A stretch of 64,000 nucleotides of DNA from Monocercomonoides exilis PA203 (GCA_001643675.2 LSRY02000012.1:558001-622000); one strand, 5' to 3'. Shown: positions 8,301-64,000, numbered from the stretch's first letter. The notes: generated by a model not told the origin, from the letters alone. Numbers and translations: made by a program.

Positions 8301-9143
8301 TCTCACTTCACTGAAGCTGTTGCATCGCCTCCTGTTTATTCGCTTCCACCTGAGCCGTCTTCTTCATATTCATCATCATCATCAACAACACCTTCTTCTT
8401 CCTCCTCCTCTTCTTTGTCGCTTGTTCCTTCCTCCCAAATCTCGAACGACACACAAGTTGTTTCGTATTCTCCTCACTTCGATTCCTCTCTTCTTCTGCA
8501 AAGAACATCCGCAGCACATCAATCAATTGCTCGTCCTTCTCTTCCTTCTTATCCTTCTTCATTATCCTCTTCTTCCTCTTCCTCATCCTCTTCATCCTTC
8601 TCCTTTACATCCAACCCATCTCTTCTCAATGCTTCATCCTCCTCCTCTTCTTCCTTCTCTTCCTCTTCTTCCACTGCTATTTCTCTTCCTTCCTCTTCCG
8701 ATTCCCCTCATCCACTCGCTTTTTCATCAGAAGCTCCTCTTCAGCTCAGCCAGCACCCCCTCATCCACATCTCATCCACCACACACTTCCCTTTCTTCCG
8801 CCCAATGAACCACGCCCTGCTGCCTCCACCGAATTATCCCTTCATTCCTCGCCCGTTTCCGGCAGATCAATCGTCATTTACTCCACTTTTATCTGCAGAT
8901 TCAGCTTTTTCTACTACTGCTACTTCATCATCATCTTCATCTTCTTCTTCTTCTTCAGGCTTTTCAAAGCGTCCTCCCCGCTTCTTTATCCACACCCGTG
9001 CACTTATATCTGACTTTGGGCAGAGCATGCTGCTGTCTCCAACACACCACCACGCACACAGAACTCGGCAGAATACTTCTGCTTCTTCTTCTTCCTCCTC
9101 TTCTTCTAAGTCTTCTACTACTGTTGAATCATCATCATCATCA

Positions 9144-9174
<31 letters not shown>

Positions 9175-9689
9175 TCATATCACCAGGCATTTCTCATTCC
9201 TTTTCCTCTCCTTCCATCACATCCACACACCACAGTGGCACCATTGGCTATATGGCACCTGAATTATTCACTGACTCCAATGCCGGCTGCAGACAGCACA
9301 GCGACGTGTGGTCACTTGGCGTCTGTTTGTATCTGCTTCTGTTTTCAGCGCTTCCATTCGACGAAGCAGCAGATTCATCATCAACAATGGCTGGCGTGTG
9401 CAGAAGAAGAAAGCTGACACAAGATGAAACAATAGAGGAGATTGTTCATTGCACTGGACCGCCTCCTCCACCTTATCCATTTGCACCAATAACACAAGAC
9501 AATCAGCAGGGGCAGCAAGAGCAACAACCCGATGGTGCACCGGAAACTCTTGTTCACAGACCTAAGGCGTTGATATTCCTTTTGAAAACAATGATGAATC
9601 CAGATCCGCATTTAAGGCCAACCGTTCAGCAAATATTGAATTTCTTGGAAGAAAACAAAGAAGAAATAATAAAAACGCCACTCTTATGA
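5361..9689 (+). CDS. IKS1: IKS1-family Ser/Thr protein kinase with very large low-complexity inserts
   Basis: Exon 1 5361-5432 (MNQFCCPTCGRPF...); GT..AG intron 5433-5513 keeps frame with ORF 5931-9689. Motifs: GYYSHFFIELETLGSGRYGSV, CRHVLGGFELGEYAVKKI, LREVRILERLHHPQIVSYRHSWIE, HCDIKGENVLL, ISDFGQS, GTIGYMAPE, SDVWSLG, RPTVQQIL. The N-terminal CPTCGRP and the 'GY..FF.E...LG / HVL.G..LG.YA.K / SYRH.W.E' pattern are typical of the IKS family. Confidence 0.85.
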
Positions 9690-9763: not shown

Positions 9764-12700
9764 ATGGGTCAAAAAATGAGTCAAAGTTAGTTTTTCTTTT
9801 TTGATTGTTAATAGATGACCCTAACTTAAACAATGCGCTCATTTTCGTTTTGCGTTTTTCTATTTTTCATTTGAACAGCAGTCAACTTCACTGAGTTTCT
9901 GTTATCACAAAATCAGAGTGAGGTTTGAAATAATAATTTTTCAGGGAAAGTGCATGCTAATACTCCTTAAAAAAATCATTGATTAAATGCATTCATAGGA
10001 TGTGAAGCGAACAAAAGAGGAGTTGACTCTTGATCGAATTGTTTCACACAGAAAACGTCTTGAACAAGAACTGAACTATTTGCTCTCAAGGGCCCCTTCT
10101 GAAATACCAGGACAGAGTTTGGAAATTTCATAAATATTACATATAGTTGTTAATATTTAAAAAATATGAAAATTAGTGGGAAATGTTGTTCCGACTTACG
10201 ATTCTGTCGAAGACATGATAGAAGTTGAAGAAAGGAAGAAACGCTCTATTATAAACATTGTGAGCTTATCTTTTTATCTTCTCAAATTATTACTTGAGAT
10301 TTTTCTTATTTAGCAAAAACGTATTTTTGAATTACAGCAACAGGAATCTTTACTCCGCGAGGAGATACATAAGGCAAAGCGTCATCCACCTGTACCCCAC
10401 GTAATACCACAAAGGCCAATATCCCAAAACGCTCCAACTTTCCAAGAGCAGAGTGATTCATTTGTTGCTTCTTCATTCTTTGACCAATTAAAGCAAAAAC
10501 AAATTGAAGTTGTTCGCGAAACTGTTGATCAGACACGCTTTACTGGAATTGAAGTAAAAGACGGTCGCAGGAAATCGTCAGAAGGCATTGAAGAAGAAAA
10601 AACTGAAGTGCAAGAGTTTTTTAATGAGTCAAAGTTTCCAGTTGAAGAAGGCGAATATTCTGAGGAGGAAGATTATCAAGATGCAATTGAAATTCCTCCT
10701 CCAGAGAGAACGGTCACTCCAATATTGCCCTCTCTTCTTGATGAAAAACCTTCAAACACTTCACCTCCCTCATCTTCACCATCTCCCACAGCAGATTCAC
10801 CATCACCATCACCAGAACCATCTTCATCACCTTCTCCATCTTCATCTCCATCAACATCCTCATCCTCATCACATTCAATTCTTCCTCTCCTTTCCTCCTC
10901 ACCTCAAACAGCCACAATCCATTCATCTTCCAAAGCATCCAGCACCTCCCCTTCAGACTCCGAGCACCAGCCAGCCTCCGCACTGATCCACGCCCCTGCC
11001 CCGCTGCAAGAGAGCGGCAACGACGAGTACTTCACCATCGACAGCACCACAGACGCGTTTGGGAAGCAGCTTCTTCTGAAGTGCCCGAGTGTCGTATGGG
11101 AGGCGCTGCTGAACTTCCAAAAGGCTGGTGTGAGATGGCTGTGGGAGCTGCACTTGGCATCAGTGGGTGGAATTCTTGGGGATGAGATGGGACTGGGGAA
11201 GACGATCCAGACGCTAGCGTTTTTAGAGTCGCTGTGCTGTTCGGGTTTGTATAAGACGTCTCTACTGCTTTGCCCGGCGACGGTGATGAAGCAGTGGAAG
11301 GACGAGACGAAGCTGTGGGCTCCGCATTTGAAGGCGGTGATTCTGCACTCGAGCTTTGAGATGGAGGCAGAAAGAGAAGTGAGGCAGGAGAAGCAGGAGA
11401 GGCAAGAGAGGAAGGAGAGGAAGGAGAGGAGAGAAAGAAAAGAGAGGAGAATGTCGCTAAAGAGGAAAGAGAAGGCAAAAGAGAAGGTGAAAGGTAAAAG
11501 AAAAGCGAAGAAGAATGATAAAAGCAATAAGACGGAGAAGAGAAGGAGAAGGAGAAGCAGTAACATTGGTAATGAACGTACAAATAAGAAGAAGAAAACA
11601 AAAATAAATGGAAATTCTGAAACACAAGGCAACAAACTTGAAGATCAAGAAATAACAAATTCACTTGAAGAATCTTCTTCACCGCAAAAATCTTTTTCTC
11701 CAAACACTCCAAAGGAAGAAATTGAAGAAAATGACAAAATGAAAGACGATGAACTTCAACCAAAAAAAAGGAAAAGAAGCGATTTAAGCTCAAAATCTCA
11801 ATCAAGTGATCCTGACACAGGTTCAAGTGATGCAAGAAAAGACAATTCAAAAGCAAATGGTACAAAAAAAAGGATGAGATTGTCAAATAAAAAGCGGAAA
11901 ACATCTTCAAGTGCAGAAGAAGATGAGAAAGAAGAGGACAATTTTGAAGATTTTGAAGAAGAAGAAGAGGAAGAGGAAGAAGAATCACCAGAGGATGATA
12001 GCGACAGTGAATTCTTTTTGTCTGATGTTGATCCAAAAAGCATGCGCAAAAAACAGAGTGAAGTGTCAGAGGACGAATACAATGAAGCAGAAAGCAACGA
12101 ATTTGATGAAGAATTTGAGGATGGAATAAGTGATGATGAAGAGATAGAGGAAGGTGATGAGGAAGAAAATGATGAAGACGAAGATGAAGACGATTCAAGT
12201 GTTCAATTCAAAGATGAAGACGAATACGAAAACGGCGAGCTTTCCTCAGATCTGTCTGAAGAAGACTCTGACGAAGATCTGCTTGCGCCTCTGCGGGCAC
12301 AGCGCGCCAGGCAAAGCGGGTCTTCCTCTCTCACTGACCAGCTGTTCTCCTCTATTTCCAGTCAGATTGGACAAAAAAGATTCAACAGGCATCAGGAGCA
12401 GATGATATCCTCAAGGGAGCTTCTGCTGTCTGACAACATGTCTCTGAAGGAGGCGCTGCTGTGTCCATCTTCTCAGGACGAGGCACTCAACATGACACTG
12501 CAGCGGTGCATAAACAAGCAGAATGTGCTTGTGATTGCGACTTATGAGTCCGTGCGCCTCAGACCTGCCTCTTATCTGTCTCACGAGTGGCAGTATGTGG
12601 TGCTGGACGAAGGGCAGCGCATCAAAAACACAAAGACGCTCATCTCGAGGGCTGTGCGAAGGTTCGACACGCCACACAGACTGATTCTTTCAGGCTCGCC

Positions 12701-15700
12701 CATTCAGAATGCACTGGATGAGCTGTGGTCTCTTGTGGACTTTGTGTTTCCGGGGCGTCTGGGAACACTGGCAGCATTCAAGACTCAGTTTGGAGTGCCC
12801 ATCACGCTGGGCACAAGATCGGGTGCATCGCCTTTCTTTGCGAGGATTGCGGTGCAGTGTGCGGTTGTGCTGCGCTCGCTGATCAAAACGGTACTTCTGC
12901 GGAGGGTGAAGAAGAAAGTGCTGCTGCAGATGCCTCCGAAACAGGAGACGGTGCTGTTCTGCCGCATCACATCAGCACAATACAAAGAGTACATCAAGTA
13001 TTTGCAGTCAGGAGAGATTGATAGGATTATCTATGGCAGGTCACGAGGGGATGAAGGAGATGGCAGAAGATATCGCTCGCAAAAGGGGAAGTACAACGGG
13101 ACGTATGGAGCTATTGATGTGCTGAGGAAGATATGCAACCATCCTGATCTGCTGCTACTGAAGGAGAAGGACACAAGAATACTTCCAGCGGATTACAGAC
13201 ACTGGAACAAGTCAGGGAAGATGAAAGTGCTGAGAGAGCTGCTTTTGCAGTGGTTTGCTGATCATCCTGCAAACAGACAGAGGAAGAGGACTTTGTCTTC
13301 TTCCTCTTCTTCTGCCAGTCAACAAGGCCACAAAGTGCTTCTCTTCTGTCAGACGAGGCAGATGCTGGACATCATAGAAGAGATGGTGTATGAGCACGGC
13401 TTCCCCTTTATGCGGATGGACGGTTCAACTTTGATCAACCAGCGGCAGAAGATGATTGAGCGGTTCAACACATCCCCCAATGAGTTCATTTTCTTGCTCA
13501 CCACAAGAGTGGGAGGGGTGGGTGTGAACTTGACAGGAGCTGATAGGGTTGTCATATTTGATCCAGATTGGAACCCCTTTACGGACATACAGGCGAGAGA
13601 AAGAGCGTGGAGACTGGGGCAAGTGCGGTCTGTGCAGATATTTCGGCTGATTTCGTCTGGCACGATAGAAGAGAAGATATATGAGAGGCAGATATTCAAA
13701 GAGGTTGTGGGGTCGAAGGTGATCCAGGCAGCAGACAAGACGGTGGGGAACTTAGCTCTTCACTCAGCAAGTTCGCAGGCAAACAGCCGTTCGACAGATG
13801 GGAAGACGCGCAAGGGGAAGAAGCTGTCTGTTGGCGGGTGGGAGATGAAGGATCTGTTTGCAGCACCGAAGGACCCAGCTGAGGAAGAGAGGCAGATTGC
13901 AGAGATGGAGAGAAGAAGGCGTGTGTTGAGGATGAAGCAGAAACGGAAAGAAGAAAAAGACGAAGAAATGAAAACAACTTTAGAATTGGGTGATGCTGCA
14001 AATAAAAAGAAGGATAGTGAAAACAATTTGAAGTCAATGGATTCTGATGGGATAGAACAAAATGACATACCCAATTCTGAAGAAGAAGGAGAAGAAGGAG
14101 AAGGAGAAGAAGGAGAAGGAGAAGAAATGAAAGAAGAAGACAACGGAGTGAAAATTGGTGACAAACAAATGGCAGAAACAGCAGCAGATGCGTCTACAGG
14201 TACAGGTACAGACACAACACAAATTGACTCGCTGCTCAAAGGGTTGATTGTGAGAAGTGGGACAGAGCAGTCTGAGAAGGAAAGGGCGAAGAAATTGGTG
14301 GAGCAGATGAAGATGAAGGCGGAGGAGAAAGCAAGAGATGAAGAGAAGAGAAAAGAAAAAGAAGAAAAAATGAAGAATGAGATGAAGACAAATGTGAAAA
14401 AAGAAGAGGAAGCATTGGAAGAAGGAGAAATAACATCAGATGATGAAGCAATAAAGCCAGAAGCAGAAAGCGTGACTGATCAGAAGTCTTCAAATGATGA
14501 GATAAAAGAAGAGAAAGCAACAACTGACAACACATCAGTTTCTCAAATAGCATCTTCTCTTTCAAACAATTTGAGCAATGCAGAGAAAGATGAAGGAGAA
14601 GGAGAAGGCGAAGGCGAAGATGATGAAGACGAGCTTGTCTCCATTCTTTTGGGGAACAAGAAAGACGAAGTGAATGAAGATGCACATTCTTCATTGCAGA
14701 GGGCTATAGGCGATGCGATGGTGCAGAGGAAGCTGATGGGCACAGCAGAGTTTGAGAGGACGATGCTGAAGGCGCTGAATAAAGAGGAGCAGAGAAAGAA
14801 GATGAGGGAGATGGAGAAGAAGAAGAAAGAAGCGAAGGGGAAGAAAGGGAAGAATGGGAAAGAGGCAGATAAAGATAAAAACGTAGAAAAAGAAATGAAT
14901 AACACCAAAGAAATCAAAACAGACAGAGCAATCACACCAACAAAGCCCAAACCCAAACAAAAGCAATTTTCTCTACCAATTGCTCTTTTAGATGCAACAG
15001 CGTCACACGATGTGCTTGTGGGCGACAAGGACGAAGAGGAAGACAACGAGGCAAAAAGAGAAGAGGAAGAGAGGCTGTGGGCGCTCCGAGTAAAAGAAGA
15101 CCAGGAAATACAAGCATTTGCGAAGCTGAAGGCGGAGAATCTGAAGAAACTAAGTCGATCGTTCTCTCGCTCGCCTTCTCCGTCACAGTCGCCAACATGT
15201 TCAAGTCTTTCCTTGTCTTCTTCTTCTTCTTCTTCTTCTTCTTCTTCTTCTTCTTCTTCTTCTTCTCCATCTTCTTCTTTTTCACACACATCATCATTTT
15301 CTTCTTCTTCTTCTTCTTCTTCTTCTTCATCCAAGAAACATTCCACTTCATTGAAGAAACAATCTCCTGCAACTTCTCTATTCATTCCATCTCCTTCTCC
15401 TCCTCCTTCCTTTTCTCCATTCATCACCAGACAGCCTCCTCAGCCTTTTCAGCCCATTGCACCTTCTCCCACATTCATGCAGAAATCCAAAGATTCCTCG
15501 ATTTCAAGCAATTTATCAGCAAAACCACACATTTTCAGCCAAATTCAAACCCAGCTGCTTTCCCATCCTTCTCTTCCTGAAAGAGAGCTGTCATCAGCCG
15601 AGCTGAGCGAGCGGCGCATCGACGAAGACGCGAAGTTTGTGGCGAGCCAGGCGCTGACAGCAATCAAACAGTCAGTTCATCACAAGACACACCACGACCT

Positions 15701-15944
15701 TATCCACGAGAATGCTGAGAGTGTCCGGTCAATCATCAGTGGAGACGCGAAAATGACGAAAAGTGTGACAAGGGCTTCTTCTTCGCCGAATAAACGACAG
15801 CAGGAGCTTGTGAATGGAAATCATGAGACGAATTTAAATGTGAATGAACGAGCTCCGCTGTACCAGCTGAAAACAGGGATGCATCCAACAAGCTCACAAA
15901 ATGTTATAATAAAAGGCTCAATTGCATTGGGGAAAAAATCATGA
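9764..15944 (+). CDS. ERCC6: SNF2-family DNA translocase ERCC6/CSB/Rad26 (transcription-coupled repair)
   Basis: ORF 10608-15944 has [86 protein letters not shown] and FLLTTRVGGVGVNLTGADRVVIFDPDWNP.TD.QARERAWRLGQ (CSB/Rad26 signatures). Four short 5' exons from ATG 9764 join in frame via GT..AG introns; the start is less certain. Confidence 0.9.
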
Positions 15945-17196
15945 TTTATAAAAAAAAAAAAAGAAAGTTTAAAGGGATGCGTGTTATATCAATAGGAACC
16001 ATGCAATAATGCCTTATCAATTTTATATATTTGAATTTTGGATATTTTTGTTTCTATATTTATTTTTAATTTTGAATTGGCTTTTGAGGGATTATTGAGA
16101 CCTATCATTTGCTTGAAAATATGAGTGCCTGTAATACAATTTTAAAACTTTTCGATCGAAATTACAAAAATAATATTTATAGTAAGAAATTTTCTTTCAA
16201 ATTTCCATTTTTAGAAGAATCAATTGGAGTAAAATTCTTACATTTATAAAAAAAAACAATGATTTGTTCCAAACAATTTCTGATATTTTATCATAATATA
16301 TCTTTCATTCTCATGCATAATTTGGCATATGATAACTTCACGTAGTCATTGAAGTGTTCACAAAAATTTAATACATAAATAAAACGAGATTAAATAGAAT
16401 AAATAAAACACGTTCAGCATCGAATTTTCGGTTTTTAATCTCACATTTTTTTAGATAAAAAACCTATCAAATAGTTAAATATTGTGGGAGAGATCAATTT
16501 TTGAAAAAATGAAAAAGTAAATATTTCGCATTTTGGTTATGTATTTAATAACGCATTTAATAAAAATGAAAGATATATTAATTAAAATAAAATTTAAAAA
16601 AAGATTCGACGTAAAATACATTTGGAAAATGAATTTTTTTATTTTCATTTCTTAAAATAAAAAATATTTAGGGTATTTTTCAAAAAATTTAAGTTGAAAA
16701 TTTTTTAAATGTTTCTTTTATTTTCGAACCTATTTGTTATTTATTTATTATTTAATATACAACATAAATAAAAATATAGACAAAAAACATATTCTCAGCG
16801 ACTACGTTAAGTTATCATTAGTCCATAATTATATAGAATACATATTTATATATAGAAGAAAAAATTGAATGGAACAAAATATTTGAAGCAAATAGATATC
16901 ATCCCATTTGTCTTTCAAAGTTAAGTTCAAAAAAATAAAAAAACGACTTTTTTTTCAATCATATAATAACTTCAAACCATGATGGAAGGAATGCAGTGCA
17001 ATTTGATTTTTCTTGAATTCTTCTTTTGGTTATCAACATAAATTTTCGAAAAATAACAATGAAATACATATTATCTTTTTGTTTTGGGAGAGAATGATTA
17101 TAATGATGGGATGATCAGAAATAATTTTATAAAAATTGAAGCAAACCCCTTTAATTTAATTATTATTAAATCATTAAAGGAAACAACACAAAAGTC

Positions 17197-18789
17197 ATGA
17201 TCCATTATAGTGGGAAAAAAGTAAGTTCATCAAAAAGGAAAACAGAATTAACAAAGAGGGATAAATGGGGAAGGACGAAAGCAATGCGCTGGATCATGGA
17301 GAAAAAAACAGAACCACCAAAGTGGATGATACATGATACTTCTCAACGCAATAACAATGGTTATACTATGGCCATGTATTGGATTCAATTTGTGCAGACA
17401 GAACCTCCAGAATGGATGCGGCATGACAACGAACTTGCCAACAAGGGAGGGTGGACGATGGCAATGCATTGGATTATTACTGTTAAGACTGAACCGCCAG
17501 AATGGATGCGGCATAATAATAAGCTTGACAACGATAAAGGAATAACAATGTCTATGATTTGGATTACACATGTGAAAACAGAACCACCCAAGTGGATGAG
17601 ACACGGAATTACTCTTGTTGATAATCGTGGATGGACAATGGCGATGTATTGGATTCAGTTTGTTCAAACAGACCCACCAGAATGGATGAGACACGACATC
17701 ACATTTTGCGATAAATACGGAAACACTATGGCCATATTGTGGATCGAAAAAGTTAAGGCAGATCCGCCAGAATGGATGAGACATGAAATTACTCTTGCTG
17801 ATAACAAAGGATGGACAATGGCCATGGCATGGATCGAAGAAGTTAAGACAGAGCCATCGGAATGGATGCGACACAATATTACGGTTGCTAATAAGAGAGG
17901 AGAAACAATGGCAATACTTTGGATTTTTCATACAAAGACGGAGCCACCTGAGTGGATGAGACACAACATTTCACTGCGTGATAATAGCGGACTAACGATG
18001 GCCATACACTGGATAAAGCAAGTTAAAACAGAACCTCCCGAATGGATGCGTCATGATGCCACACTTTGCAATAAAAATGGATGCACAATGGCCATGACAT
18101 GGATAATACACGTGAAAACAGAGCCACCTGAGTGGATGAGACATGACATTGCTCAACGTGACAATTTTGGATTGACAATGTCCATGTACTGGATAAGATT
18201 TATTGAATCTGATCCTCCACAATGGATGAGACACGACCTCACATTTGCCGATAAAGCTGGAAATACTATGGCAATGACATGCATCGAAAATGTCAAAATA
18301 GAACCACCGGAATGGATGAGACATGAAATAACACTTTGCAACAATTTTGGATCAACAATGGCAATGCTGTGGATTATGTGGGTTGGAACAGAGCCACCAG
18401 AGTGGATGAGGCATGACATAACACTTTCTCAAAAGGATGGAGGAACGATGGCCATGTTGTGGATTCAGTTTGTTCAAACAGAGCCACCTGAATGGATGAG
18501 GCATGATTCTTCACTTGCTGATAAGGACGGTTGGACAATGGCTATGATATGGATCGAAAAAGTTAAGACAGAGCCACCTGAATGGATGAGACATGATATT
18601 ACGATTGCTAATAAGAGAGGAGAAACAATGGCAATACTTTGGATTTTTCATACAAAAACAGAGCCGCCTGAGTGGATGCGTCATGACATTACAATAAGAG
18701 ACAATTTTGGAAGGACAATGGCAACATTTTGGAAAAAGAAATGCGTGAATAAGCCACCAAAGTGGATGATCACTGATGATTCCACATGA
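17197..18789 (+). CDS. Intronless tandem-repeat protein: 20-aa basic leader plus 17 x 30-aa ankyrin-derived Trp/Met-rich repeats
   Basis: 530 aa = 20 + 17x30 with no indels. Consensus x[DN]xxGxTMAMxWIxxVKTEPPEWMRHDITL; 90-bp DNA periodicity; TGA stop at 18789. Confidence 0.9.
   Translation: MIHYSGKKVSSSKRKTELTKRDKWGRTKAMRWIMEKKTEPPKWMIHDTSQRNNNGYTMAMYWIQFVQTEPPEWMRHDNELANKGGWTMAMHWIITVKTEPPEWMRHNNKLDNDKGITMSMIWITHVKTEPPKWMRHGITLVDNRGWTMAMYWIQFVQTDPPEWMRHDITFCDKYGNTMAILWIEKVKADPPEWMRHEITLADNKGWTMAMAWIEEVKTEPSEWMRHNITVANKRGETMAILWIFHTKTEPPEWMRHNISLRDNSGLTMAIHWIKQVKTEPPEWMRHDATLCNKNGCTMAMTWIIHVKTEPPEWMRHDIAQRDNFGLTMSMYWIRFIESDPPQWMRHDLTFADKAGNTMAMTCIENVKIEPPEWMRHEITLCNNFGSTMAMLWIMWVGTEPPEWMRHDITLSQKDGGTMAMLWIQFVQTEPPEWMRHDSSLADKDGWTMAMIWIEKVKTEPPEWMRHDITIANKRGETMAILWIFHTKTEPPEWMRHDITIRDNFGRTMATFWKKKCVNKPPKWMITDDST
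17257..18786 (+). repeat. Coding tandem array, 17 units of 90 bp
   Basis: The core GA(A/G)CC(A/G/T)CC.GA(A/G)TGGATG(A/C)G.CA recurs every 90 nt, with synonymous variation between units. Confidence 0.95.
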
Positions 18790-20073
18790 ATGTTAGTCTT
18801 TTCGAATTGAGAATCTTCTCGTTTTTTAATTTGAATCAGCAGAAAAAAATAGCATCTGATTTTAGTCGTTGCAACAAGAAAATTTGACAATTTCATTTCA
18901 ATGAAAATTTAAAGTTATTGATCAAAAATGTAGCGGAGAACTTTATGCTCCGCCAAATATCCAAATAAGCCTTATTGGCATTCATTTTTGTATCTCCACT
19001 TTTCTTTTCTTTTCTTTTTTTTTGTTTGGTCTATCGTTCAATTTCAATAATTTTATCAAACCATGTCAGTTTTATCTTTTTCTGAAAAACAATAACAATT
19101 TGATGAATCTTATGCATTTTTCAAATTAAGGCACAATATCCAGTATTCCATGAGTTAACCTAGAAGCAGAGGAAAACAACAATATTTTTGGAAGACAATT
19201 GAAGAATGTGGATTGCCAATTTTTCTAATGCTGGCAGTGATGTTGAAATAGTCAAAGTTGTCATTATAATTTCCTTTTTTCGCTCAAAATGGCTGTGTAT
19301 CGAAGAGCGTAATCCAGATTCAATTTACCATTATGCTGTTTGATTGTATCATATATCAAACGATTGGATACTCTTTGTCGGTGTTTCTCATGTCTTTGGC
19401 GTATAATTTTTGCATTTATGAAGAAAGCAATGATTGTTGCAAGCTTTTTCTGCAATAATATCATAAAAAGTCAACCATTACAATGCAAACAAATGCAAAA
19501 AAAAAAATTAAAAATTGAAAAAAAAAATCAGAAAAATTTGTTAGGAACAAAATTCATAAAGTGAATAATTCTGATCCAAATAGATTTTGCAAAAAGAAAA
19601 ATTTGGGAAAATTTTTATGAACTGCAGAAATAAAACTGTATTTTTCTTCAGACTTAACCAACTTTTTTTTTCCTTATCTATTTTATTGTGAAATAATGCA
19701 TTTTCCCCTCGAAATTTTTTTTAAATGATTTTATTCAAAAGATTGAACGATGATTATTTTGATATCGTTCTTTTTCAAGGAAGAAGAGAATAATAAAAAA
19801 GATGTGAACGAATATCAAACTAGAAAAATGAAAATTTTTTCGTAGAAAGCTGTTTTGTTGTTAAGAATGAACTTTTATTTATTGCCTTCAAAATCTTTCA
19901 AAAAGATTCTTTATTTTTTGAGAAAATAATAGAAAAGATTCTCAATGAGTTTTCAATTTTTCATAAATACTATGAAAAATTAACGGATTATAGTATTTTG
20001 TTATTTATTTCACAAACAAATATGAAAACTTTTTATTGAAGATCCAGTCCCCATAGTGCGCTTTTGTTTCCAA

Positions 20074-23000
20074 ATGTGTTTCATTGTGTTTTATTTATTG
20101 TTCCTTGCTTTTGCGAAGCCAACTGATCGGTCCGTGATAGTATCAACACAAGCCCCGTTTCAGCCAGTTTCGCTCTTGGCAGAATCGTGCGAGTTCTTTG
20201 CACAACTTGATTCAGATTATTATTGGGGATTTTTGGACTATGCATTTGAACAAGGACTTGGAAAGAAGAACGAAGAAGAACTAATGAAAATTATATACGA
20301 TTTTACAAAGGAAGCAACCGATTCTTCTGCTCTTGCTGCTTCACTTCGAGCAACACTGCATGTTCATACATTTGCTCCATTTATTGAATCTCAACATCAA
20401 ATGGCGATGAACGATTGGCATATGTATGCAAGTTCGGCTCAACTTTCAAAATATTCAACTCCTCCACCAATTTTTGCGGTTCTTGTCCAACCTTATCAAG
20501 ATAATCAGGCTAAACCTGGTAGACCTAATGGAGAGAATTATTTGCACAATAACAGAAGTGTTATATTCACGTCACCTGAAGATTTGAAAACGAAACTGAC
20601 GTTTTCTAAAAGGCAGAAATTGGACTATGCCAGACTTTATGGATCCAGTCCAATTCAGCCAGTTGAATCTCCCACCCTCTTGAATTCTGATCACATATTT
20701 CCATCGACAATAAGTAGAAATACGAATTTGCCCATTGTGATTTTATATGGATCAGTTAACGATGAAGGAATGCAAGATTGGATCAAAATGCTGAAAAGCA
20801 CTCAAGAAGAAACACTTCGAAAAGGGCCAAGTGGCGAAAATCGCGAGCATTTCCCATCTTTCATCTTTACCGTGAGACATTTCAGAAATTATGAAAAAGA
20901 ACCACAAACAATGTTAAAGAAAGAGAAAACAGAAAATATGACTGTGTGTGGATATGGAATTGAGCTGGCATTGAGAGATTCTGAATACAAATTTGGTGAC
21001 AAAGGAAAACATGGAAATGACGCAGAAGAAGATGATGGAGACGAAGAAGGGATAAGTCAGAATGCAAAAGATGGGCGTTTTGACATCCTGCCTCCAGAAT
21101 ATGACCTTCCTGATGATGTATATGACACACCTGTTTTAGGCATTAACATCAAGAAAATGGCACAGAGACACAGACATTTAGCTGCCTTTGCGGAAACCCC
21201 ACGCAGTGAGAAAAACGCGACAAGCTGGGCGAAAGCAGACGAAGAAGAGGAAGTTGTGATTGAAGGGCGAAGCAGATTGGATCGCTTGTTCCGTGGGCTG
21301 ATTCACGAGTCGTTTGCGGGATTTCTTCCGATTGCACGTGTGAAGGACATTGGGACGAAGACTACACTTCACATCAAAACACAACCAGATCCACTTGGAG
21401 CACTTGTTGACTTGAGCGACAACTTCCCTGTGGTTGGGCCATCCATCGCGAAAATGCCGATGTCGATGGAGCTGCGTTCGCATCTGATGTCCGTTCAGCC
21501 GTACTTCCAAGGCGACGATGCACTGCTCCTCGTCAACGGGCGGGCACTCACTGGGAAAATGTCTGTGTGGTCGCTGCTGTCTGCTGTGACAGACGAGCTA
21601 AAGCACGCTGTGGCGCTGCAGCAGATCGGGATGCACAACACCGCCATCCGCAAGATTGCTCAGATTCCTGTCTTCACCCCGAACTTGCACACACGTGGAT
21701 ACGACCGCATCCGCACTGAAAAGTCCTCCTTCGTCACAGAAACCATCCGTGTCATTGCGCGCCCACCAAGCGAGAAGTACTTTCTGAACAACATCGAGAC
21801 AGACAAGAAGTACAATGAATGGTCTGGTGACATAACTCTTCTGGCTGAAATCGACTTAAACCAGCAGTATGTACCCAGCGTGCGCCGCAATCTGGTTGTG
21901 GTGACGGCATTTTTGGATCTAGCGCGCCCGGAGTCGCAGCAGACGATTGTGAACATGCTTGAGCTGCTCGACCAGGGCTATGCCATCCGCTTTGGTGTGG
22001 TGCCTGTTGTATCTCCCTTGCTGTCACCTACAGCTGCTCAGCAGTCTTCTTCGGCTCAGCTGGCGCGGTGGTGGCTGGCAGAGATGAGAAGAGGCGGGGC
22101 AATGAATGCAGCGCGGATGGTACGAGGGCTCGAGAAGAGGAAGCAGCAGCTGTCGATCAACAATGTGCGCCAAATGGTTGTTATGTCTCAGCACAAGAAG
22201 GGAGTGCAGAATGCGTGGATGACACTCGAAGACTGGAAGAACGTGACAGAAGGCAAAGACAAGCAGATCGAGGAGGATATGAAGGAGATCAAGATGGTGC
22301 TGGAGGAGACGCTTGTGCCTGTGCCGTGCTTGTCATTCAATGGGATCATCTGCCCTGTGGACAACATTGAGCAGACAGTGAGGGCATACTACCCACAGGA
22401 GCTGAGGCTGATGAGGCAGCTCGTCATGCAAGGCGAGCTCAGCATCCCGAAGAAGAAGAAGAGAGAAGACTTGTATCTAAACATCCCTGGCTTCCAGCGG
22501 AGCAACGCACCGGTGGAGATCCTGTGGAACATCACACGAAGAGAAAGGTGGGTGGAGAAGGCGAGGGAGATTGGAGCGATTGGGAGACTGTCGCTGACAG
22601 GGCGCAAGGAGCTGGATGCAGAGAGGATCAGGCAGGCAGAGAAGGAGCTGGGAATCACTGTGGAGATGAAGATGAAGCCAAACGCGACAGAGCTGGAGAA
22701 GAAGCGGAGGGTGTACCAGACAGCTGCCGACGGGTTTGAGAGAGAACGGGCAGTGAAGCGGTTTGAGGAGAAGAGTCCAGCGTGGGTGGACAAGATGACG
22801 AAGATGCGGCACATGGAAGGGTTCACGTTTGTGACAGAGACGAAGTGGACGCCGCAGATTCTGAATGCTCACGAGCCACTGGGAGGTGCCGGCACACGCT
22901 CCAGCAGCGCCGACAAGGACATCCTCGCGACGTCGGTCTCTGCGACTGATTTTTATGCGCAGTCGAGTGGCACTCCCGCCGCCAATGCGCATTTTGTGTC

Positions 23001-26000
23001 GCCCACTCTGTTTGCGAAGATGATGCGCCGCGCGTCGGCCACTGCGCAGTTCGTGCAGCCGGCGTCACGCCCAACACAAGCGAGCAAAGGCGCGGGGAAA
23101 AGCAAGAGGCTGGCGGGGATGTCAGAGAACAGCATCGCCTCCCGCCTGCTGCAGACGAGCTCACCACTGACACATTTTGTGGCAGTGGATTACACACAGA
23201 AGCCGCAGATGGAGGCAGCTAGTTCCATCATTTCTGCAATGAGCGGGGGAATTTCGCGGGCGGCGCTTTTGTTTGCGACGAAAGGGACAGTGAAGCCCTT
23301 GTCGTTTCCGTCTGTGTTTCTGTCGACGATTGGCATTGTGCACCCGCGTGTGACACAGTCATACACCTCCTTTTTGATCCGACTGTACTACACAATGAAG
23401 CTGGAGCCACCAGCAGGGCAGTCTGTGAACCAAACAGCATCTCCAAGCAGCAAAAGGGAGAAAGATCAGACGAATGAACATCTCCTCACAGAAGACGTGC
23501 TTGTGGCGCAGATAGCAAAATGGGCAGCGGAGGAAGCGAAGATGGTGAAGGAGACGACGAAAAAGACGTCCAACATGATGATCGAAGACCTGTTCAAGTG
23601 GAATGCAACGCTCCTGGCACGCATCCACAATTTGGCACAGCAGACGGCTGTCAGCAGCAAAGTCAAAGCGATTCTGGAAGAGCACAACGAAGTCATAAGA
23701 AAGCTTAGCTTGAACGTTCCTCTGACTCCATTGGAACTTCAACTGCACTCGTCTCCAACGTCACCGCTGGCTTCAGGAAGAGAAGAAGGAATTGTCGATG
23801 CATCAGTCAACTTCTTGGGATCAGAGAAAGGACAATCATCATCTTCATCATTATCTTCTTCTTCTTCTTCTTCTGCAAGTGAAGGAAAGCCTGTCATTCC
23901 ATGCACTTTCCTCATCACCAACGGGCTTGTCCGACCGATCACAAAGGCACAAACTGCATCTCTTCAGTACAACCTTCTCTCATTCACAGCTCTTCAGAAG
24001 GAGACGTCAGTGAAGATCAATCATTTCTACAATGCCGAGCGTTCTGTGCCTGTTGTGGACAGTGTTATGACGAAGAGCCAGATGAAAGACTTGGAAGGAT
24101 GGGAGGTGGCGAGGAGGTGGATGCCGCTGTGGAGAGGGCTGTTCAACTGCAAAGAGGAGGAGCTGACAGACGAGGAGATATCGCTCTCGTGGTTGACTTC
24201 AGGGGACGAGAGTGAGAATGAGAAGACAATGAATGGTGAAGGAGTTAATGAGAGAGATGCAGAGGAAAGAGTGGAAGAAGAGGACGGATCGTCGTTTCTG
24301 GCTATCCTGCAGCTTGTGCAAGGGTTGCACTGCTTCAGATACCCACGTGCGGCAACGGTTGATAGAGAAGTGTTCACAGAATGCAACCGCTTGGACAACA
24401 CATTCAATCTGATGGAAGGAGCAGAAGAACAAAAAGAGAAGAACTTGCTGAGGAAGAAGAAGTATGAAGAGTGGGGGAAGAGGAAAGACGAGAAAGATGC
24501 ATCAGCAACAAGCAAAGCAGCTAACAAAGACAAAGAAGGCAATGATGATGATGATGATGACAATGAAGATTCCGAAGACGAAGAGCAGAACACGAAGTAT
24601 CTCAACATGATGGTAGCGATCAACCCACTTGTTGAGACGCAGCGCCATGTGGGCCATCTCCTTCTCTTTTTGCGGTCGCAGCTGGGCGACTGGATCGAAG
24701 GGAAAGTGGTGCTGTGCCCGACACTCACACACCACTCGCTCCCTCTTCGCTCTCTCTACCGCTTCGCTCTCTTTGACACGCCCAGATACACTCAAGGGGG
24801 ACAGCTCATTCAAGGACCCAAAGTCGTGTTTCCGCAGCTTTCTCCTTCGTTTGTGTGGACACTCAACCACCACCCACCTAGCGGCTGGGAGGTGCAGCAG
24901 AAGGAAGCGAAGGATGACTTAGACAACATCCAGTTTGAAGACTTGGATGCGCTTGGAGGAGGGAAGGAGAGGAACGTGACAGCAGTCTACAGAATCAGCA
25001 ACTTCCTGGTGAAGGGCCACTTCCACGACATCCTTAACTCCCCGGCCTCTGGAATGCCCCTCGCCATTCACTCTTTGCACGCACCCACTGAAGCATCGCC
25101 AGCACCTGAGGGGTCAAAGCTTGTGCCGTCTTTCTCTACAACAGTTGTTCTCGATGCGAAGGGTTACTTCCAATTGCCCGTAGCATCACCAGGCATCCAT
25201 CTCTTATCTGTCTCCCCTCACTTAGACAACTACATCTCAGTCGCTGCACTTTCTGAACAGCGTCTGCTTTCTCTGTCACGCGATGGCTCTCTTTTGGAGT
25301 CTTCTGTGTCGCCTGTGCTGGGTGAGGCAGTGCTGCACAGAAGCAAAAACGGCGGGTGGCTGGTGGTGAACAGCTGGGAAGGGAGTCGAGTGATGGGGCG
25401 CATCAACATGCTGTACAGAGATGTAAACTTGTTCAGCGTGGCGCGGTCGGAGCAAGAGAGAGCGAGGCAGAAGATGGAGAGGAATGCAGGGAGGATGAAG
25501 GAGAAAGGGAAAGGGAAGAATAGTGGTACATTGTCACTCACAGGCGTGCCTTCCACAGAGAACAAGCCAGACACGATTCACATCTTCACGATATGCTCAG
25601 GGCATTTGTATGAGCGGCTGGCGAAGATTATGATGATGTCTGTGCTGAACAACACGAAAAAGCCAGTGAAGTTCTGGTTTCTGGAGAGTGTGATATCGCC
25701 TTCGTTCCGTGCCGAGCTTCCCGTGATGAGCAAGAGAATGAAGTTTTCCTATCAGCTGGTGGATTATGCGTGGCCAGACGGCGTTGTGACGAATGCGCGG
25801 ACGAAGATGCGGAGTGTGTGGGCATACAAGATCCTGTTCCTGGACTTGCTGTTCCCGGTTGACTTGGAAAGGGTCATATTTGTGGATGCTGACCAGATTT
25901 GCAAGACGGATATGGACGAGCTGATGAAGATGGATCTGCAGGGCGCACCATATGGATACACACCGTTCTGCAATGACAGACCGGAGATGAAGCCGTATCG

Positions 26001-26740
26001 ATTTTGGGAGGTGTGAGAAGAGTGTTATTGTATCTTTTTTTTTTTTTTTGGAAATGCATTTTTTATTTTTTTATGATTATTTCTTCTTTTCTTTTCTTTT
26101 CTTGTTTATCTTATTAATCTTTTTTGTTTCATCAAATATCACATTTTTTTTTATTAACTTGAAATATTCCAAATAAACAATAATCATATCAGACTGGCTA
26201 CTGGAAAGAGGAACTCCAAGGCAAGCCATACTACATTTCCGCTCTTTATGTAGTTGACTTGAACCGCTTCCGTGAGATGGGTGCAGGCGATACATTACGC
26301 CACATCTACGAGGGCCATGCAAAAGATAAGAATTCTCTGGCTAATTTAGACCAGGACCTGCCTAACACTGCACAGTCAAGTGTGCCCATCTTCACTCTCC
26401 CGCAGGAGTGGCTGTGGTGCGGGTCGTGGTGCTCGGACGCCACGAGGAAAAAGGCGAAGACGATTGATTTGTGCAATAACCCAAGAACAAAGGAACACAA
26501 AATTGACTATGCAAAGAAAAATATTCCAGTTTGTGATAATTTTTATTGAATCGGTCTTTAAAGTCATCCTTTAATTTTTAAATATTTTTTCCCCCGAAAA
26601 ATTTGCAGGAATGGAATCAATATCATGAAAAACTGCTACAACTTGAAGATTCGTTGTCAAATCTGACAAGAAATGCAACACACGCTACAAAAAAAGAACC
26701 AAAAGTTCAGCGTAATGAACAAATCAAGACAGAGCTTTAA
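20074..26740 (+). CDS. UGGT: UDP-glucose:glycoprotein glucosyltransferase (GT24)
   Basis: Signal peptide [14 protein letters not shown]; [16 protein letters not shown]; [11 protein letters not shown]; GT24 domain [83 protein letters not shown]. Introns 26011-26192 and 26529-26608 restore FWE|TGYW and IP|EW. C-terminus ...QIKTEL* is a KDEL-type ER retrieval signal. Confidence 0.95.
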
Positions 26741-26883: not shown

Positions 26884-29800
26884 ATGGAAGAGCCAACGCA
26901 AACAGGAAGCTTTGGCTTTACAATTTATCATGATGTAACCGACACGTTAGTCAAGAGAGTGCAAGCAAATGCATTGGCAACAAGGCAAAAGCTTGCAAGT
27001 CTTTTTTCAGAAAATGCTTTGATTCAAGAAATAAATGAGTCAAATCACAATAAAAATGTTTGGATGCAAAATTGTTTTATTAATTAAAAATATTGATTTG
27101 GTAATGCTGGAAAAAAATTTTCTTATGAATGCAAAAATTTTTAAAACATAATGAGTTAGATTAAACTTATTTCTCAAAAGAGCGATGCCCTTTTTGTCGA
27201 ATTTGTTCAAGCCATCCTTGGATCAATTGATTATCTAAGGCCATCCATTGAATATTCCAAACAGCATATTACAGTTTTGTTACCTCATAATAAAAATATC
27301 ATTTTTTGATTAAAATTTGGTTTTTTTAATAGGAGGATTATGACGTTGAAGAAATGCTTTTGAAATTGAATGAATACGAACTGAGGAATAGAAAATTGGA
27401 AGATGAAAACACTCAACTGAAATCTCTTTTAAAGAAAAGAGAAAATTTATTGAATGATCAAAGAGCGCTGTTCTATAAAGAACTTCTCGTCCTACGCGAG
27501 CAGCTTTATCAACGAGAAAGAATTGGAACGTCATATAGGGCTGATGAATTTAATATATTCAATCCTCGTGAATGGTTGGATGACTTGTTAGGTGAAGAAA
27601 CCAAAAAAGAAGAGAGCATAGAATTACTGAAGCAAAAAGTTGAAGAACGCATAAAAGCAATAAATGAACAATATGCAAAAAATAAGGATGAAATGGAAAA
27701 TCGAATGATTGTTTGAGAAGTTTTATTAATACAAAATTCTTTATCATTTTTTTATCTCTGAATGTTTGTTGAATAATAATGTTTGTGTATTTTAGCAACT
27801 GGAAAAGGATAGAGACACACAAGTCGAGCGAGTCAAAAAAATGATGAAGATGAAAGAAATTGAAATTGATTCGATGAGAGAGCAGCTTATTGCATTGAGA
27901 GAGTATGCGTCATTTATATGTTTATTTATTCCTCATTCACATTTTTTTTGTAAAATTTCGTTTTATTGTTAAACCCACAAACTTATATTTAAAAAATATC
28001 TTAATATTTTCTGATAATTTTTTACAGAGAGACAAACGGAGAGAGCGCCAATCGTGTTGAACAGAGCGAAGCGACAAAGGCAGAAGTGATTGTGTGGAAG
28101 AGTCGATTGGAAGAGAAAGAGGAAGAAGTGAGACGTCTTCAAAAGCGGATTGCAGAGCTGGAAAGCCAGTTGGCTCAGATTAGAAGCAAAAAGAAGGCGA
28201 AAGAAGGAAATGACTCTTCGTCTGAGTCAGATGAGGAAGTTGAGGAAGGAAGTGATGAGAAGAAGAAGGACAAAGGCAATAAAGAAGACGAGGAAAACGA
28301 TGAAAGCAACAAGAAGGATAAGAATAAGAATAATAAAAAGAAGAAGAAGAGAGAAGAAGAGCTGGAAGAAGAGCTGAGGCTGCTGAAGACAGAGCTGCGT
28401 GTGCAGATGGAGAATGTGCGGCATCTGAAAGAGGAAGAGAGGCAGAGCAATGAATACGAGGAAGAGAAAAAGAAGAGAAAAGAGGCAGAAGCAGAAGTGA
28501 TGCAGATGAGGAAGCAAATGGAGGAGCTGTCACAGGAGAACAATCAGCTTCTGATGGGCGAAGAAGACCCCAGTCTGCTGAAAGAGCAAGGGAGAAGGGC
28601 GAAGCTGATGAGGATTCTGAAGAATTCCGCAGGACGCAACGGAAACAACGGAAACGAAGAAGACGAAGACGATGCGATTGTGTTGGAGCGGTTTGAGAAG
28701 ATGAAAGGGGCCATACGCGAAGAAGACAGGATGAAACACGAAAGAGCGGTGCATAACTGGAACCTCATGCACAAGAGGCTGAAGTCGAAGTACTTCAAGG
28801 TTGGATTCAAATAGCACTGTTTAGATAAGATTTTTTGAATGATTTTCTTTTATTTCTTTTTTCTTTCTTTTCTTGTTGTTTTTAATGCATTCTTTTGCAT
28901 ATATGTTGCATATTAATTTGTTACAATATGATGCAATCATTTGTGATAAATGAATTAAACTGCTACAGGACAAAGTGACAGCTCTTCGCAACGGCACATA
29001 CGACGCATCAAAAGATCCATTTGTCTCGTTTTCTTCTTCATCATCATCATCTTCTTCTTCTTCTTCCTCCTCTTCATCATCATCATTATCTTCTTCTTCT
29101 TCTTCTTCACCATCTTCCTCAGACGACGAAGAAGAAGATAATAGTAACGACGATGAAACCTACGACAGATACGGCGGATGGGGCGACCACTACACCGAAG
29201 AAGATGAAAGAAAAGCGGGAAAAAGCAAACGAGGCGAATTTCTCACCGAAGCCGACGAGAAAGAGAAGAAAAGCCAGAAGCTTCAGAGGAATGAAGAGAA
29301 GAAGCAGCGGAAGCGGAAGAAGTTTGTGTTTGTGAACGTGGCTTTTTGTGAGCGGATGGCGCAGCTGAAGGACCGAGCAGCGGAAGAGCTGAGGAGGCTG
29401 AAGGAGAAGATCGAGGCAGACCGAAAGAGGAACTTCGAGATGATGATGAGGACAACGAAATCGCTCGTGTTTGGATTCCCAATACAGGGATCATCTTGTT
29501 CTTCTTCCTCTTCCTCTTCTTCTTCATATTCTTCCTCTTCCTCTTCCTCCTCTTCCTCCTTTTCTGATGCATCTTCCACTCCTTCTGCCTCAGATGTGTC
29601 CCCCACCTCCACACCAACACGTGCTCGCTCACATTATCTCCTGCCCCTTCAGCCTGCTCATCAGCCAGCAAACAGATCGCCTTTCATATCACCCACATTC
29701 GCCTCTTCTCGTGCTCCTCTTGCTGCCTCTTCCCTTTCTGCCCTTTCTTCTCCCTCAGAATTGAGATACATGTCAGCTTCTTCTCCTTATGCTTCTTCTT

Positions 29801-40669: not shown

Positions 40670-47172
<6,503 letters not shown>

Positions 47173-62914: not shown

Positions 62915-64000
62915 TTATTGCGTTAATGAATTCGGCCGCTTCGAGTTCTTCTTCTTTCTTCCTGATTTCTGCTTCTCTGAAATGTCTTTCCAGCGCTCAT
63001 CAACTCTGAAGAATTTGTTCGTATCCTCTTCAATCTTCCTCTGCAAATAGCCCAGCGCAGCCAAGTTAAAAGACAGCTCGTCTCTTTTCTGCTCCAGCGA
63101 CTTCTCCAACGCTGACGCCACCGCCGTCACAGCCGCTGTGTCTGCTGCGCTGTGCACAGGCCCCGTCAGCTGCGAGTTGTGGATGGTGACAAGCGTGTGC
63201 GCCACACGGTGCAGAAGCTCAGACTCCTCCATGTGCGACGACAGCACTGCTGGGACCAGCGAAAGAAGACGCCCTGCATTAGCATAGGAAAGTGCAGATA
63301 GCACTGTCGGAAGCGAAGCCCGAGGAATAAACTTAAGCTGGCGGAGCAGGGGCGATTCTGTTGGTTGCTTTGGAGCCGAAGTGGTGACAACATACATGTC
63401 TTCTTCATCTTCTTCCTCGTTCTCTTCATCCATTTCCTCATCCTCCTCATTCTCCCCGTCTTTCCCTTCCTCTCCTTCTTTTTTGCTCCTCTTCATCTTC
63501 TTTGCTTCGTTCTCAGACTCAGCAATGGACGACAGCTGTCTCTGTAACCTCTCCTCTTGCTCAATGCCTTCCAGCAGAGCATCTACGCCTTTCAGCGTCT
63601 CTGCTGTTCCTTTCTCAACAATCGCACCCGTTCCCCTCTCCCCAGTCGACGTCTGCGCCTCGTCAATCATCTCAATCATCTCCTTCTCCAGTATCTCCTC
63701 ATCCCTGTCTTCCTCATCTTCCCCTTTGAAAATCTGCGCCTGTGTCCGAATCCACAGCCGCACTCCTCTTTCTGTCCCCGCAGCAAACACTGCTCCTCCG
63801 TCTGAAGACACAGCGAGGCCAAGCAAAGACCCAGCTGGGTTTCCTCGGAGCGTCTGCGCACAGTCAAAATCGTCTCCGTCCCACATTTTGATGTCCCCTT
63901 CTCTTCCGCAGCTGAGGCAGTAGTGCGTCCCTCTAAGAGGCACAATTCCTGTGATAGGCGCCGTGTGCCCGCGCATCTTCCCTCTCAGATCTCCCCGCTG
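62915..64000 (-). CDS. UTP12: U3 snoRNA-associated WD40 protein UTP12/DIP2/WDR3, C-terminal part (5' end beyond the window)
   Basis: WD40 repeats (GHTAPITGI..CLSCGREGDIKMWD; LAVSSDGG..AGTERGVRLW.RT), ETLKGVDALLEGIE, Utp12 C-terminal domain (L.FIPRASLPTVLSALSY..., FNLAALGYL) and a basic tail. Confidence 0.88.
   Translation of the reverse strand, partial: QRGDLRGKMRGHTAPITGIVPLRGTHYCLSCGREGDIKMWDGDDFDCAQTLRGNPAGSLLGLAVSSDGGAVFAAGTERGVRLWIRTQAQIFKGEDEEDRDEEILEKEMIEMIDEAQTSTGERGTGAIVEKGTAETLKGVDALLEGIEQEERLQRQLSSIAESENEAKKMKRSKKEGEEGKDGENEEDEEMDEENEEEDEEDMYVVTTSAPKQPTESPLLRQLKFIPRASLPTVLSALSYANAGRLLSLVPAVLSSHMEESELLHRVAHTLVTIHNSQLTGPVHSAADTAAVTAVASALEKSLEQKRDELSFNLAALGYLQRKIEEDTNKFFRVDERWKDISEKQKSGRKKKNSKRPNSLTQ

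Follow-up and report, generated by a model that had tools for sequence, protein, structure and literature searches.

Introduction

Ankyrin (ANK) repeats, represented in Pfam by PF00023, PF12796, PF13637 and further families, are 33-residue units of two helices and a beta-hairpin loop, which share the signature G-x-T-P-L-H-x-A-A and stack as L-shaped elements into an elongated solenoid. The fold is known from engineered binders, the designed ankyrin repeat proteins (DARPins), from ANK-RING and other ANK-bearing E3 ligases (MIB1, XB3/XBAT31, HACE1, ASB/FEM1), and from giant-virus proteins (Mimivirus L93, Catovirus, Hokovirus, Klosneuvirus). Repeat arrays of another kind read nucleic acids: transcription activator-like effectors (TALE) use 33-35-residue two-helix units in a right-handed superhelix that winds around DNA, with one repeat-variable di-residue, and pentatricopeptide repeat (PPR) and PUF proteins use helical-hairpin or three-helix units of 35-36 residues.

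Here we describe a gene in a 64,000-nucleotide stretch of the genome of Monocercomonoides exilis PA203 (GCA_001643675.2 LSRY02000012.1:558001-622000), the whole of which is referred to as the window. The gene, at 17197..18789 on the plus strand, encodes a stand-alone array of 17 divergent 30-residue ankyrin-type repeats, most likely a protein-binding scaffold or adaptor. This reading is based on the fold, on the location of the variation within the units and on relatives in which the array is fused to a RING finger. An earlier note on this DNA, made from the sequence alone, had regarded the protein as a shortened ankyrin offshoot with hypervariable positions, and had listed several checks, some of which were carried out in the present analysis.

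Architecture of the repeat protein

The gene is intact and intronless, running from an ATG start through 530 codons to a TGA stop. The product of 530 amino acids (about 63.5 kDa, isoelectric point 7.7, net charge +1) contains 9.1% methionine and 7.4% tryptophan, and an identical sequence is present in the ESM Atlas. Cutting of the translated open reading frame (ORF) exactly reproduced the build given in the earlier note, a leader of 20 amino acids followed by 17 indel-free units of 30, together with its invariant and once-differing residues and its list of the residue pairs at positions 14-15. The gene is thus divided as follows.

17197..18789, plus strand: complete gene (ORF list, translation, composition)
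17197..17256, plus strand: basic leader of 20 amino acids, MIHYSGKKVSSSKRKTELTK (sequence; DSSP of the full-length model)
17257..17346, plus strand: unit 1, divergent and basic (net +4), N-terminal and cap-like (43-56% amino-acid identity to the other units; charge)
17347..18696, plus strand: units 2-16, internal 30-residue repeats (column statistics; AlphaFold fragment model with DSSP; HMMER register against ANK)
17797..17976, plus strand: units 7-8, older copy of a two-unit block (nucleotide identity of unit 7 to 15 84% and of unit 8 to 16 88%, mean 64%; Tandem Repeats Finder period 180)
18517..18696, plus strand: units 15-16, second copy of the two-unit block (unit identity; codon differences)
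18697..18786, plus strand: unit 17, divergent and basic (net +4), C-terminal and cap-like (30-50% amino-acid identity to the other units; charge)

The consensus of the unit is x[DN]xxGxTMAMxWIxxVKTEPPEWMRHDITL. G5, T7, P20, W23 and M24 are invariant across the 17 units, while W12, I13, P21 and H26 are each replaced in a single unit, by C (unit 12), K (unit 17), S (unit 7) and T (unit 17), respectively. Tandem Repeats Finder detected periods of 90 and 180 nucleotides with 66-72% matches, and the mean pairwise identity between units was 64% for DNA and 57% for protein. Units 1 and 17, which had been described as basic and cap-like, are indeed the most divergent ones, with 30-56% amino-acid identity to the others and a net charge of +4 each. 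The protein stops after unit 17, with no extra domain at its C-terminus. At the other end, residues 11-18 of the leader are modelled as a short helix (DSSP, full-length model) that may cap the first unit, and the leader stretch KKVSSSKRK is a possible nuclear localisation signal.

Two side observations concern the reading frame itself. Shadow ORFs of up to 238 amino acids occur on the opposite strand (17248-17964, minus strand) and in the other frames of the array; they are a by-product of the periodicity and do not represent genes of their own. Within the leader codons, an in-frame GTAAGT at 17220-17225 resembles a 5' splice site. It is probably coincidental, since the frame runs uninterrupted and the nearest AG would give an intron of only about 25 nucleotides.

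Predicted structure and fold matches

A fragment of seven units (amino acids 15-230) was modelled by AlphaFold with a predicted local distance difference test score (pLDDT) of 96.5 and a predicted template modelling score (pTM) of 0.91. A full-length AlphaFold2 model, built with an alignment of 80 relatives, reached a pLDDT of 96-99 for residues 20-160, the remainder being less confident. Analysis with DSSP assigned to each unit a 9-residue helix (positions 8-16), followed by the linker KTEPP (17-21) and by a helical turn of three residues, EWM (22-24); a 13-residue loop per unit (positions 27-30 and 1-7) holds the G-x-T beta-turn.

An exhaustive VIA-align search of 48,161 Protein Data Bank (PDB) representatives returned 101 chains at Z >= 8, and the best 50 matches were all ankyrin-repeat proteins. 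The top match was the DARPin 6moj_A (Z 15.0, root-mean-square deviation 3.2 A, 199 of 216 residues aligned). In the VIA alignments the seven units pair with seven ANK repeats, for example with repeats R8-14 of AnkB, and the ANK domains of the E3 ligase components MIB1, HACE1, ASB and FEM1B are among the matches. When the fragment model was compared with the PDB by Foldseek, 107 matches at E <= 1e-3 were obtained, the best 50 of which were all ANK; the full-length model led to the same ankyrin families. The check by AlphaFold and Foldseek that the earlier note had proposed thus yielded a confident solenoid model with only ankyrin proteins among its top matches.

Similar results were obtained from other sources. 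The model held by the ESM Atlas itself (pLDDT 0.85) aligns to canonical ANK clusters with template modelling (TM) scores of 0.56-0.74 over 403-515 residues, the best alignment reaching a TM score of 0.74 over 515 residues. The nearest language-model neighbour of the protein is an Ank cluster (score 0.91, 172 shared features). In a library of viral structures, the best matches were giant-virus ANK proteins, such as Mimivirus L93 and those of Catovirus, Hokovirus and Klosneuvirus (E 3.8e-9, TM 0.66); poxvirus ANK proteins were also matched, and the identity was at most 18%. VIA, Foldseek and the Atlas model therefore agree on stacked L-shaped units that form an ankyrin solenoid.

Sequence relationship to ankyrin repeats

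When 1.84 billion representatives were searched exhaustively with HMMER, 206 relatives (clusters) from metagenomes were identified. Of these, 125 had an E value of 1e-10 or lower, and none was closely related; a homologue search within a restricted length range gave three relatives. The 30-residue spacing is modal across the relatives (208 spacings have this length), with minor variants of 29-33 residues, and the signature of the family reads G-x-T-x-A-M-x-W-I-x6-P-P-x-W-M-x-H-D-P.

A profile of 50 family sequences was compared with the PDB sequences. Its top 16 matches, identified by name or, for engineered entries, by the printed repeat sequence, were all ankyrin-repeat chains, including the designed consensus ankyrins 4hb5 (E 3.5e-4), 5kwd (E 1e-3) and 4gmr, followed by KANK1/2, NI3C and FEM1B. 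The match is weak but specific, and its register is consistent over four consecutive repeats. G5-x-T7 pairs with the G-R-T of ANK, x8-A9-M10 with P-L-H, W12-I13 with A-A and D27-P28 with D-P(N). K17 to R25 are aligned with H-K-E-I-V-K-L-L-L, after which ANK has three additional residues (S-K-G) before H26 pairs with an A. The three missing residues consequently fall at the end of the outer helix, and the Pro-Pro pair occupies the point at which that helix would start. This alignment confirms the register suggested earlier, with TMAM in place of TPLH and KTEPPEWMR over the outer helix, and adds the position of the deletion. The view of the protein as a shortened ankyrin offshoot is likewise borne out, both by fold searches that lead to ankyrin only and by a family profile that reaches ANK chains.

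Compared with the canonical repeat, the unit retains the G-x-T beta-turn followed by an inner helix, the correspondence of one unit to one ANK repeat, the elongated solenoid, the same variable positions, and an H-D-(P) loop equivalent to the G-A-D-(V/P)-N of ANK. Of the signature G-x-T-P-L-H-x-A-A, the G (G5) and T (T7) are invariant, whereas P-L-H is replaced by M-A-M and the Ala-Ala of helix 1 by Trp-Ile. Further differences are the length of 30 instead of 33 residues and the interruption of the outer helix by Pro-Pro, which leaves one turn (EWM) and a 3-residue deletion; the Pfam Ank models fail to detect the window protein. Among the relatives, weak Ank_2 matches were found in 13 of the 150 (out of 206) covered by our domain survey, and only P0055 (30.3 bits) scored above the gathering score of 27.3 bits. 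Because the window protein lacks both the 33-residue two-helix unit, having one 9-residue helix and a 3-residue turn instead, and a significant match to a curated Ank model, we classify the family as a divergent variant of the ankyrin clan and not as a standard member.

The earlier note knew of no named family with this consensus, and none was found in Pfam, in NCBIfam or in the literature searched; the Pfam run returned no domain match to the window protein. In particular, the literature on ankyrins of Monocercomonoides and Preaxostyla and on shortened 30-residue ankyrin repeats yielded no description of the family.

Variable positions of the unit

In units 2-16, the six most variable positions are 4, 6, 14, 15, 11 and 1, with entropies of 2.2-3.2 bits. 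Position 3 holds only K, N or D and has an entropy of 1.25 bits. The earlier list of hypervariable positions is therefore supported for 1, 4, 6, 11, 14 and 15, but not for 3. Transferred to the present register, the positions randomised in DARPins by Binz and co-workers (Binz et al. 2003) are reportedly 1, 3, 4, 6, 14 and 15. All but one of the six most variable positions (five of six) belong to this set (hypergeometric P = 2.4e-4), as the earlier note had anticipated, but the coincidence is not specific: natural ankyrin repeats vary at the same places, and the overlap is a general pattern of natural ankyrins that does not point to a special library.

In a helical-wheel projection, positions 11, 14 and 15 share an arc of 100 degrees on the side that faces away from the conserved M8, W12, V16, A9 and I13, an arrangement that fits a single exposed face. 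A diversified surface for binding, made up of the variable residues, is plausible. The array thus resembles DARPins in its near-idealised scaffold, in the variation at positions 1, 4, 6, 14 and 15 and in its divergent cap-like ends, and its best structural match is a DARPin. It differs from them in being natural, in consisting of 17 units of 30 residues, in varying at position 11 and in not varying at position 3.

Selection and age of the repeats

Residues that are conserved across the units are encoded by several synonymous codons: three each for G5, T7 and P20, four for P21 (CCA, CCT, CCC, CCG) and five for R25, from both the AGR and the CGN family (AGA, AGG, CGG, CGA, CGT). Over all pairs of units, codons for the same residue were identical in 47% of the cases, versus 37% expected at full synonymous randomisation, the latter value being computed from the codon usage of the neighbouring genes. 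Conserved residues combined with nearly saturated synonymous sites show that purifying selection acts on the protein and preserves the scaffold; lack of such selection, together with lack of expression, had been named as a reason to abandon the earlier proposal. By the same codon evidence, the repeats are old and not a product of recent amplification or gene conversion, and the array is a coding sequence, neither non-coding nor a repeat arisen by chance.

A younger event is superimposed on this pattern. Units 7 and 8 were duplicated as units 15 and 16 (84% and 88% nucleotide identity, respectively), which explains the period of 180 nucleotides. The pair of units 8 and 16 shows 5 synonymous and 3 non-synonymous differences, none of them at paratope positions. 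Units 7 and 15 differ by 4 synonymous and 7 non-synonymous changes, including changes at positions 4, 11 and 15.

Relatives with additional domains and their genomic context

The best relative, P0001 (E 9e-96, 41% identity), carries a C-terminal RING finger. Such a RING finger was found in 13 of the 150 relatives surveyed, including P0001-P0005, P0014, P0038, P0041, P0052 and P0091. The arrangement implies that the RING-fused relatives would be E3 ligases with the 30-residue array as their receptor part. The closest relatives thus resemble the known ANK-RING and ANK-E3 ligases in joining an array to a C-terminal RING. The window protein is unlike them: it stops with unit 17 and lacks a RING, U-box, SOCS-box or other effector domain as well as any zinc-finger match.

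A different feature was seen at the N-terminus of 15 of the 150 relatives, including P0010, P0019, P0027, P0039, P0040, P0070, P0111 and P0119. These share a conserved motif of about 25 amino acids, MKIEEAxEIIxRCPYxFTEEDIxF, which has no Pfam match and is absent from the window protein.

A metagenome scan for relatives gave 19 loci. Three of the contigs (L016:1-7668, L017:1-12955 and L018:1-13479) have a GC content of 19-24% and dense ATG-initiated ORFs on both strands, mostly ORFans. Small family members are located at L017:2323-3024 and L018:9968-10486. The three contigs also encode a Dda-like superfamily 1 helicase, a DEAD helicase, a serine recombinase, a patatin-like phospholipase and a class-I aminoacyl-tRNA synthetase. 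With a GC content, an ORF layout and a gene content typical of giant viruses, the three contigs resemble giant-virus contigs. A comparison of these AT-rich contigs with PHROGs gave helicase and recombinase matches only, which neither establish a phage origin nor rule it out. When IMG/VR and the GTDB bacterial and archaeal genomes were scanned for the pattern, with an alignment of the window protein's own units, no relative was found. The likeness to giant-virus ANK proteins therefore lies in the structural matches and in the small family members on giant-virus-like contigs; it is set against an identity of at most 18%, the lack of a member in the IMG/VR scan and the position of the window gene among ordinary eukaryotic genes.

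One relative, P0007 (714 amino acids), has a region of about 300 amino acids ahead of its repeats. It is encoded on L001:1-10474, a gene-dense, eukaryote-like contig of 55% GC, where it adjoins genes for NifU_N, Rce1-like, EF-hand and RNA polymerase subunit N proteins. By this placement, the family extends to a quite different eukaryote. The contigs of two other relatives, P0019 and P0005, are too short to show neighbouring genes.

Genomic setting and transcription

A tblastn search with the protein found no second copy, so that the gene is single in the window. It sits between a SNF2 helicase gene and a gene for UDP-glucose:glycoprotein glucosyltransferase, in the company of kinase genes and a WDR3/Utp12 gene. 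Judged by these neighbours, the setting is that of an ordinary eukaryotic chromosome. The neighbouring long ORFs are the following.

5931-9689, 10608-15944, 20056-26016, 41183-42748 (minus strand) and 62915-63976 (minus strand): ordinary eukaryotic genes

Together they comprise two protein kinases, a SNF2-family helicase, the glucosyltransferase with thioredoxin-like domains and a WDR3/Utp12 fragment. Two further ORFs, 28975-32253 (1092 amino acids) and 42925-44790 (minus strand, 621 amino acids), have no Pfam match.

In four RNA-labelled runs from one study, contigs contained 24-39% of the sampled words of the interval 16800-19200, which is compatible with transcription of the gene.

Discussion

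Our results suggest that the protein is most likely a scaffold or adaptor built on an unusual variant of a familiar fold, and not the carrier of a new recognition code. In the model that we propose, the inner helix of the ankyrin unit is kept and lengthened (TMAMxWIxxV instead of TPLHLAAxxG), and the outer helix is interrupted by Pro-Pro and cut to the single turn EWM, with three residues gone at the junction of helix 2 and the loop. The bulky Trp and Met residues probably fill the core opened by the lost helix. The units stack as an elongated ankyrin-like solenoid. The anatomy of the repeats, the purifying selection on the scaffold, the ankyrin fold and its register are shown by the present data. 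The concave face of the solenoid would carry the variable positions, with 1, 4 and 6 in the beta-turn and 11, 14 and 15 along a single flank of the helix. This variable face would be the binding face, and its groove could hold one long partner or several partners. The ligand is presumably a protein, given the general role of ANK arrays and the fusion to a RING E3 domain seen in close relatives; in those relatives, the array would act as the substrate receptor, being the only candidate for the substrate-binding part.

Several observations weigh against this interpretation. Pfam gave no Ank family for the 530-residue protein even at E <= 10, and NCBIfam nothing relevant. A phmmer search of the protein against the PDB sequences produced titin and antibody noise only (E >= 0.04), and a profile of the protein's own units likewise found no ANK chain, with the same noise at E >= 0.04. 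The link to ankyrin at the sequence level is accordingly weak, its best E value of 3.5e-4 coming from the wider family. A 30-residue unit without a proper second helix also fails the textbook helix-turn-helix definition. The solvent exposure of the variable positions is deduced from the register and from helical periodicity. The protein carries neither a RING nor another effector domain, and its expression is indicated only by the RNA-run contigs with their 24-39% of sampled words.

The earlier note had also raised the idea of a TALE/PPR-like nucleic-acid code. In a reader of the TALE, PPR or PUF kind, every unit would recognise a single base by its residues 14 and 15, and the leader would serve as the nuclear localisation signal. 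Indel-free units that keep their scaffold constant while one di-residue varies would suit such a code, as would the basic KKVSSSKRK leader and the charge of +4 on both terminal units. However, the likeness is purely formal and ends with the repetition of many near-identical units that differ at a few residues. No TALE, PUF or PPR fold was present in the top 50 of the three structure searches, the top matches of which were ankyrin, and Pfam gave no PPR or PUF match. With its TM score of 0.74 to ordinary ANK arrays, the Atlas model has the shallow curvature of ANK and not that of a superhelix wrapping a nucleic acid. The protein is near neutral and without a basic groove, its internal units ranging from -2 to +2 and being mostly net negative. 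Each unit has six variable positions and not two, and the 17 units contain 13 different di-residues, of which the recurring QF, EK and FH track the ancestry of the units. Finally, the relatives fuse the array to RING fingers and not to nucleases or activation domains. We regard a nucleic-acid code as very improbable.

Three other explanations were considered. A natural binder library would consist of paralogues under diversifying selection at the paratope, directed for instance at symbiont, viral or prey targets. The coincidence of the variable positions with the DARPin paratope and the excess of non-synonymous over synonymous differences between units 7 and 15 (7 versus 4, including positions 4, 11 and 15) would agree with this, and relatives on giant-virus-like contigs would fit a host-virus conflict. 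Yet the pattern of variability is generic to ankyrin repeats, the near-saturation of synonymous sites within the gene indicates that the variation is old and not rapid, and the pair of units 8 and 16 shows the opposite balance, with none of its changes at the paratope; such a library is unlikely. A structural role, in which the conserved ridge KTEPPEWMRHD binds a periodic polymer or self-assembles in the manner of the protein 21.1 family of Giardia, is somewhat less likely still. Giardia, also a metamonad, has a large family of ANK-only proteins localised to cytoskeletal structures, and the presumably exposed outer residues K17, E19, E22, R25, H26 and D27 are unusually conserved in the window protein despite saturated synonymous sites. 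The wider family, however, keeps only P20, P21, W23, M24, H26 and D27. As K17, E19, E22 and R25 vary there, the ridge looks structural, and no match to any cytoskeletal domain was found in Pfam. That the array is non-functional, a decaying tandem repeat or an ORF open by chance, can practically be dismissed: the missing domain match and the long shadow ORF on the opposite strand would be expected of such a sequence, but 1593 nucleotides are open in DNA of 37% GC with no indel in 17 units, amino acids are strongly conserved over near-saturated synonymous sites, the model is very confident (pLDDT 96.5), 206 relatives exist, and the RNA-run contigs contain part of the stretch.

A protein-binding scaffold or adaptor thus remains the preferred reading. 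The present analysis contributes relatives that are RING-fused or virus-like, a register stated explicitly against ANK, and the argument from codon saturation. A more far-reaching proposal, to which we give little credence at present, is that the 30-residue unit of one helix and a little more represents an old, separate branch of the ankyrin clan common to anaerobic protists and giant viruses, missed by present domain models and serving as a substrate-recognition module of RING ligases. In M. exilis it would have given rise to an expanded set of arrays that lack a RING and diversify at their paratope positions, a minimal DARPin-like binder repertoire possibly engaged in host-virus conflict.

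The family opens no new kind of molecular recognition. It does expose a blind spot of annotation, in that a well-folded ankyrin-type array goes without a Pfam or NCBIfam match despite 206 clusters of relatives, and a dedicated model of the 30-residue unit would annotate its members. For structure and design, the family indicates that an ankyrin solenoid can do without most of its outer helix if the core is filled by Trp and Met, and it provides a natural, near-idealised scaffold about 10% smaller than ankyrin. The RING fusions among the relatives, in turn, point to a concrete and testable role of the array as a substrate receptor.

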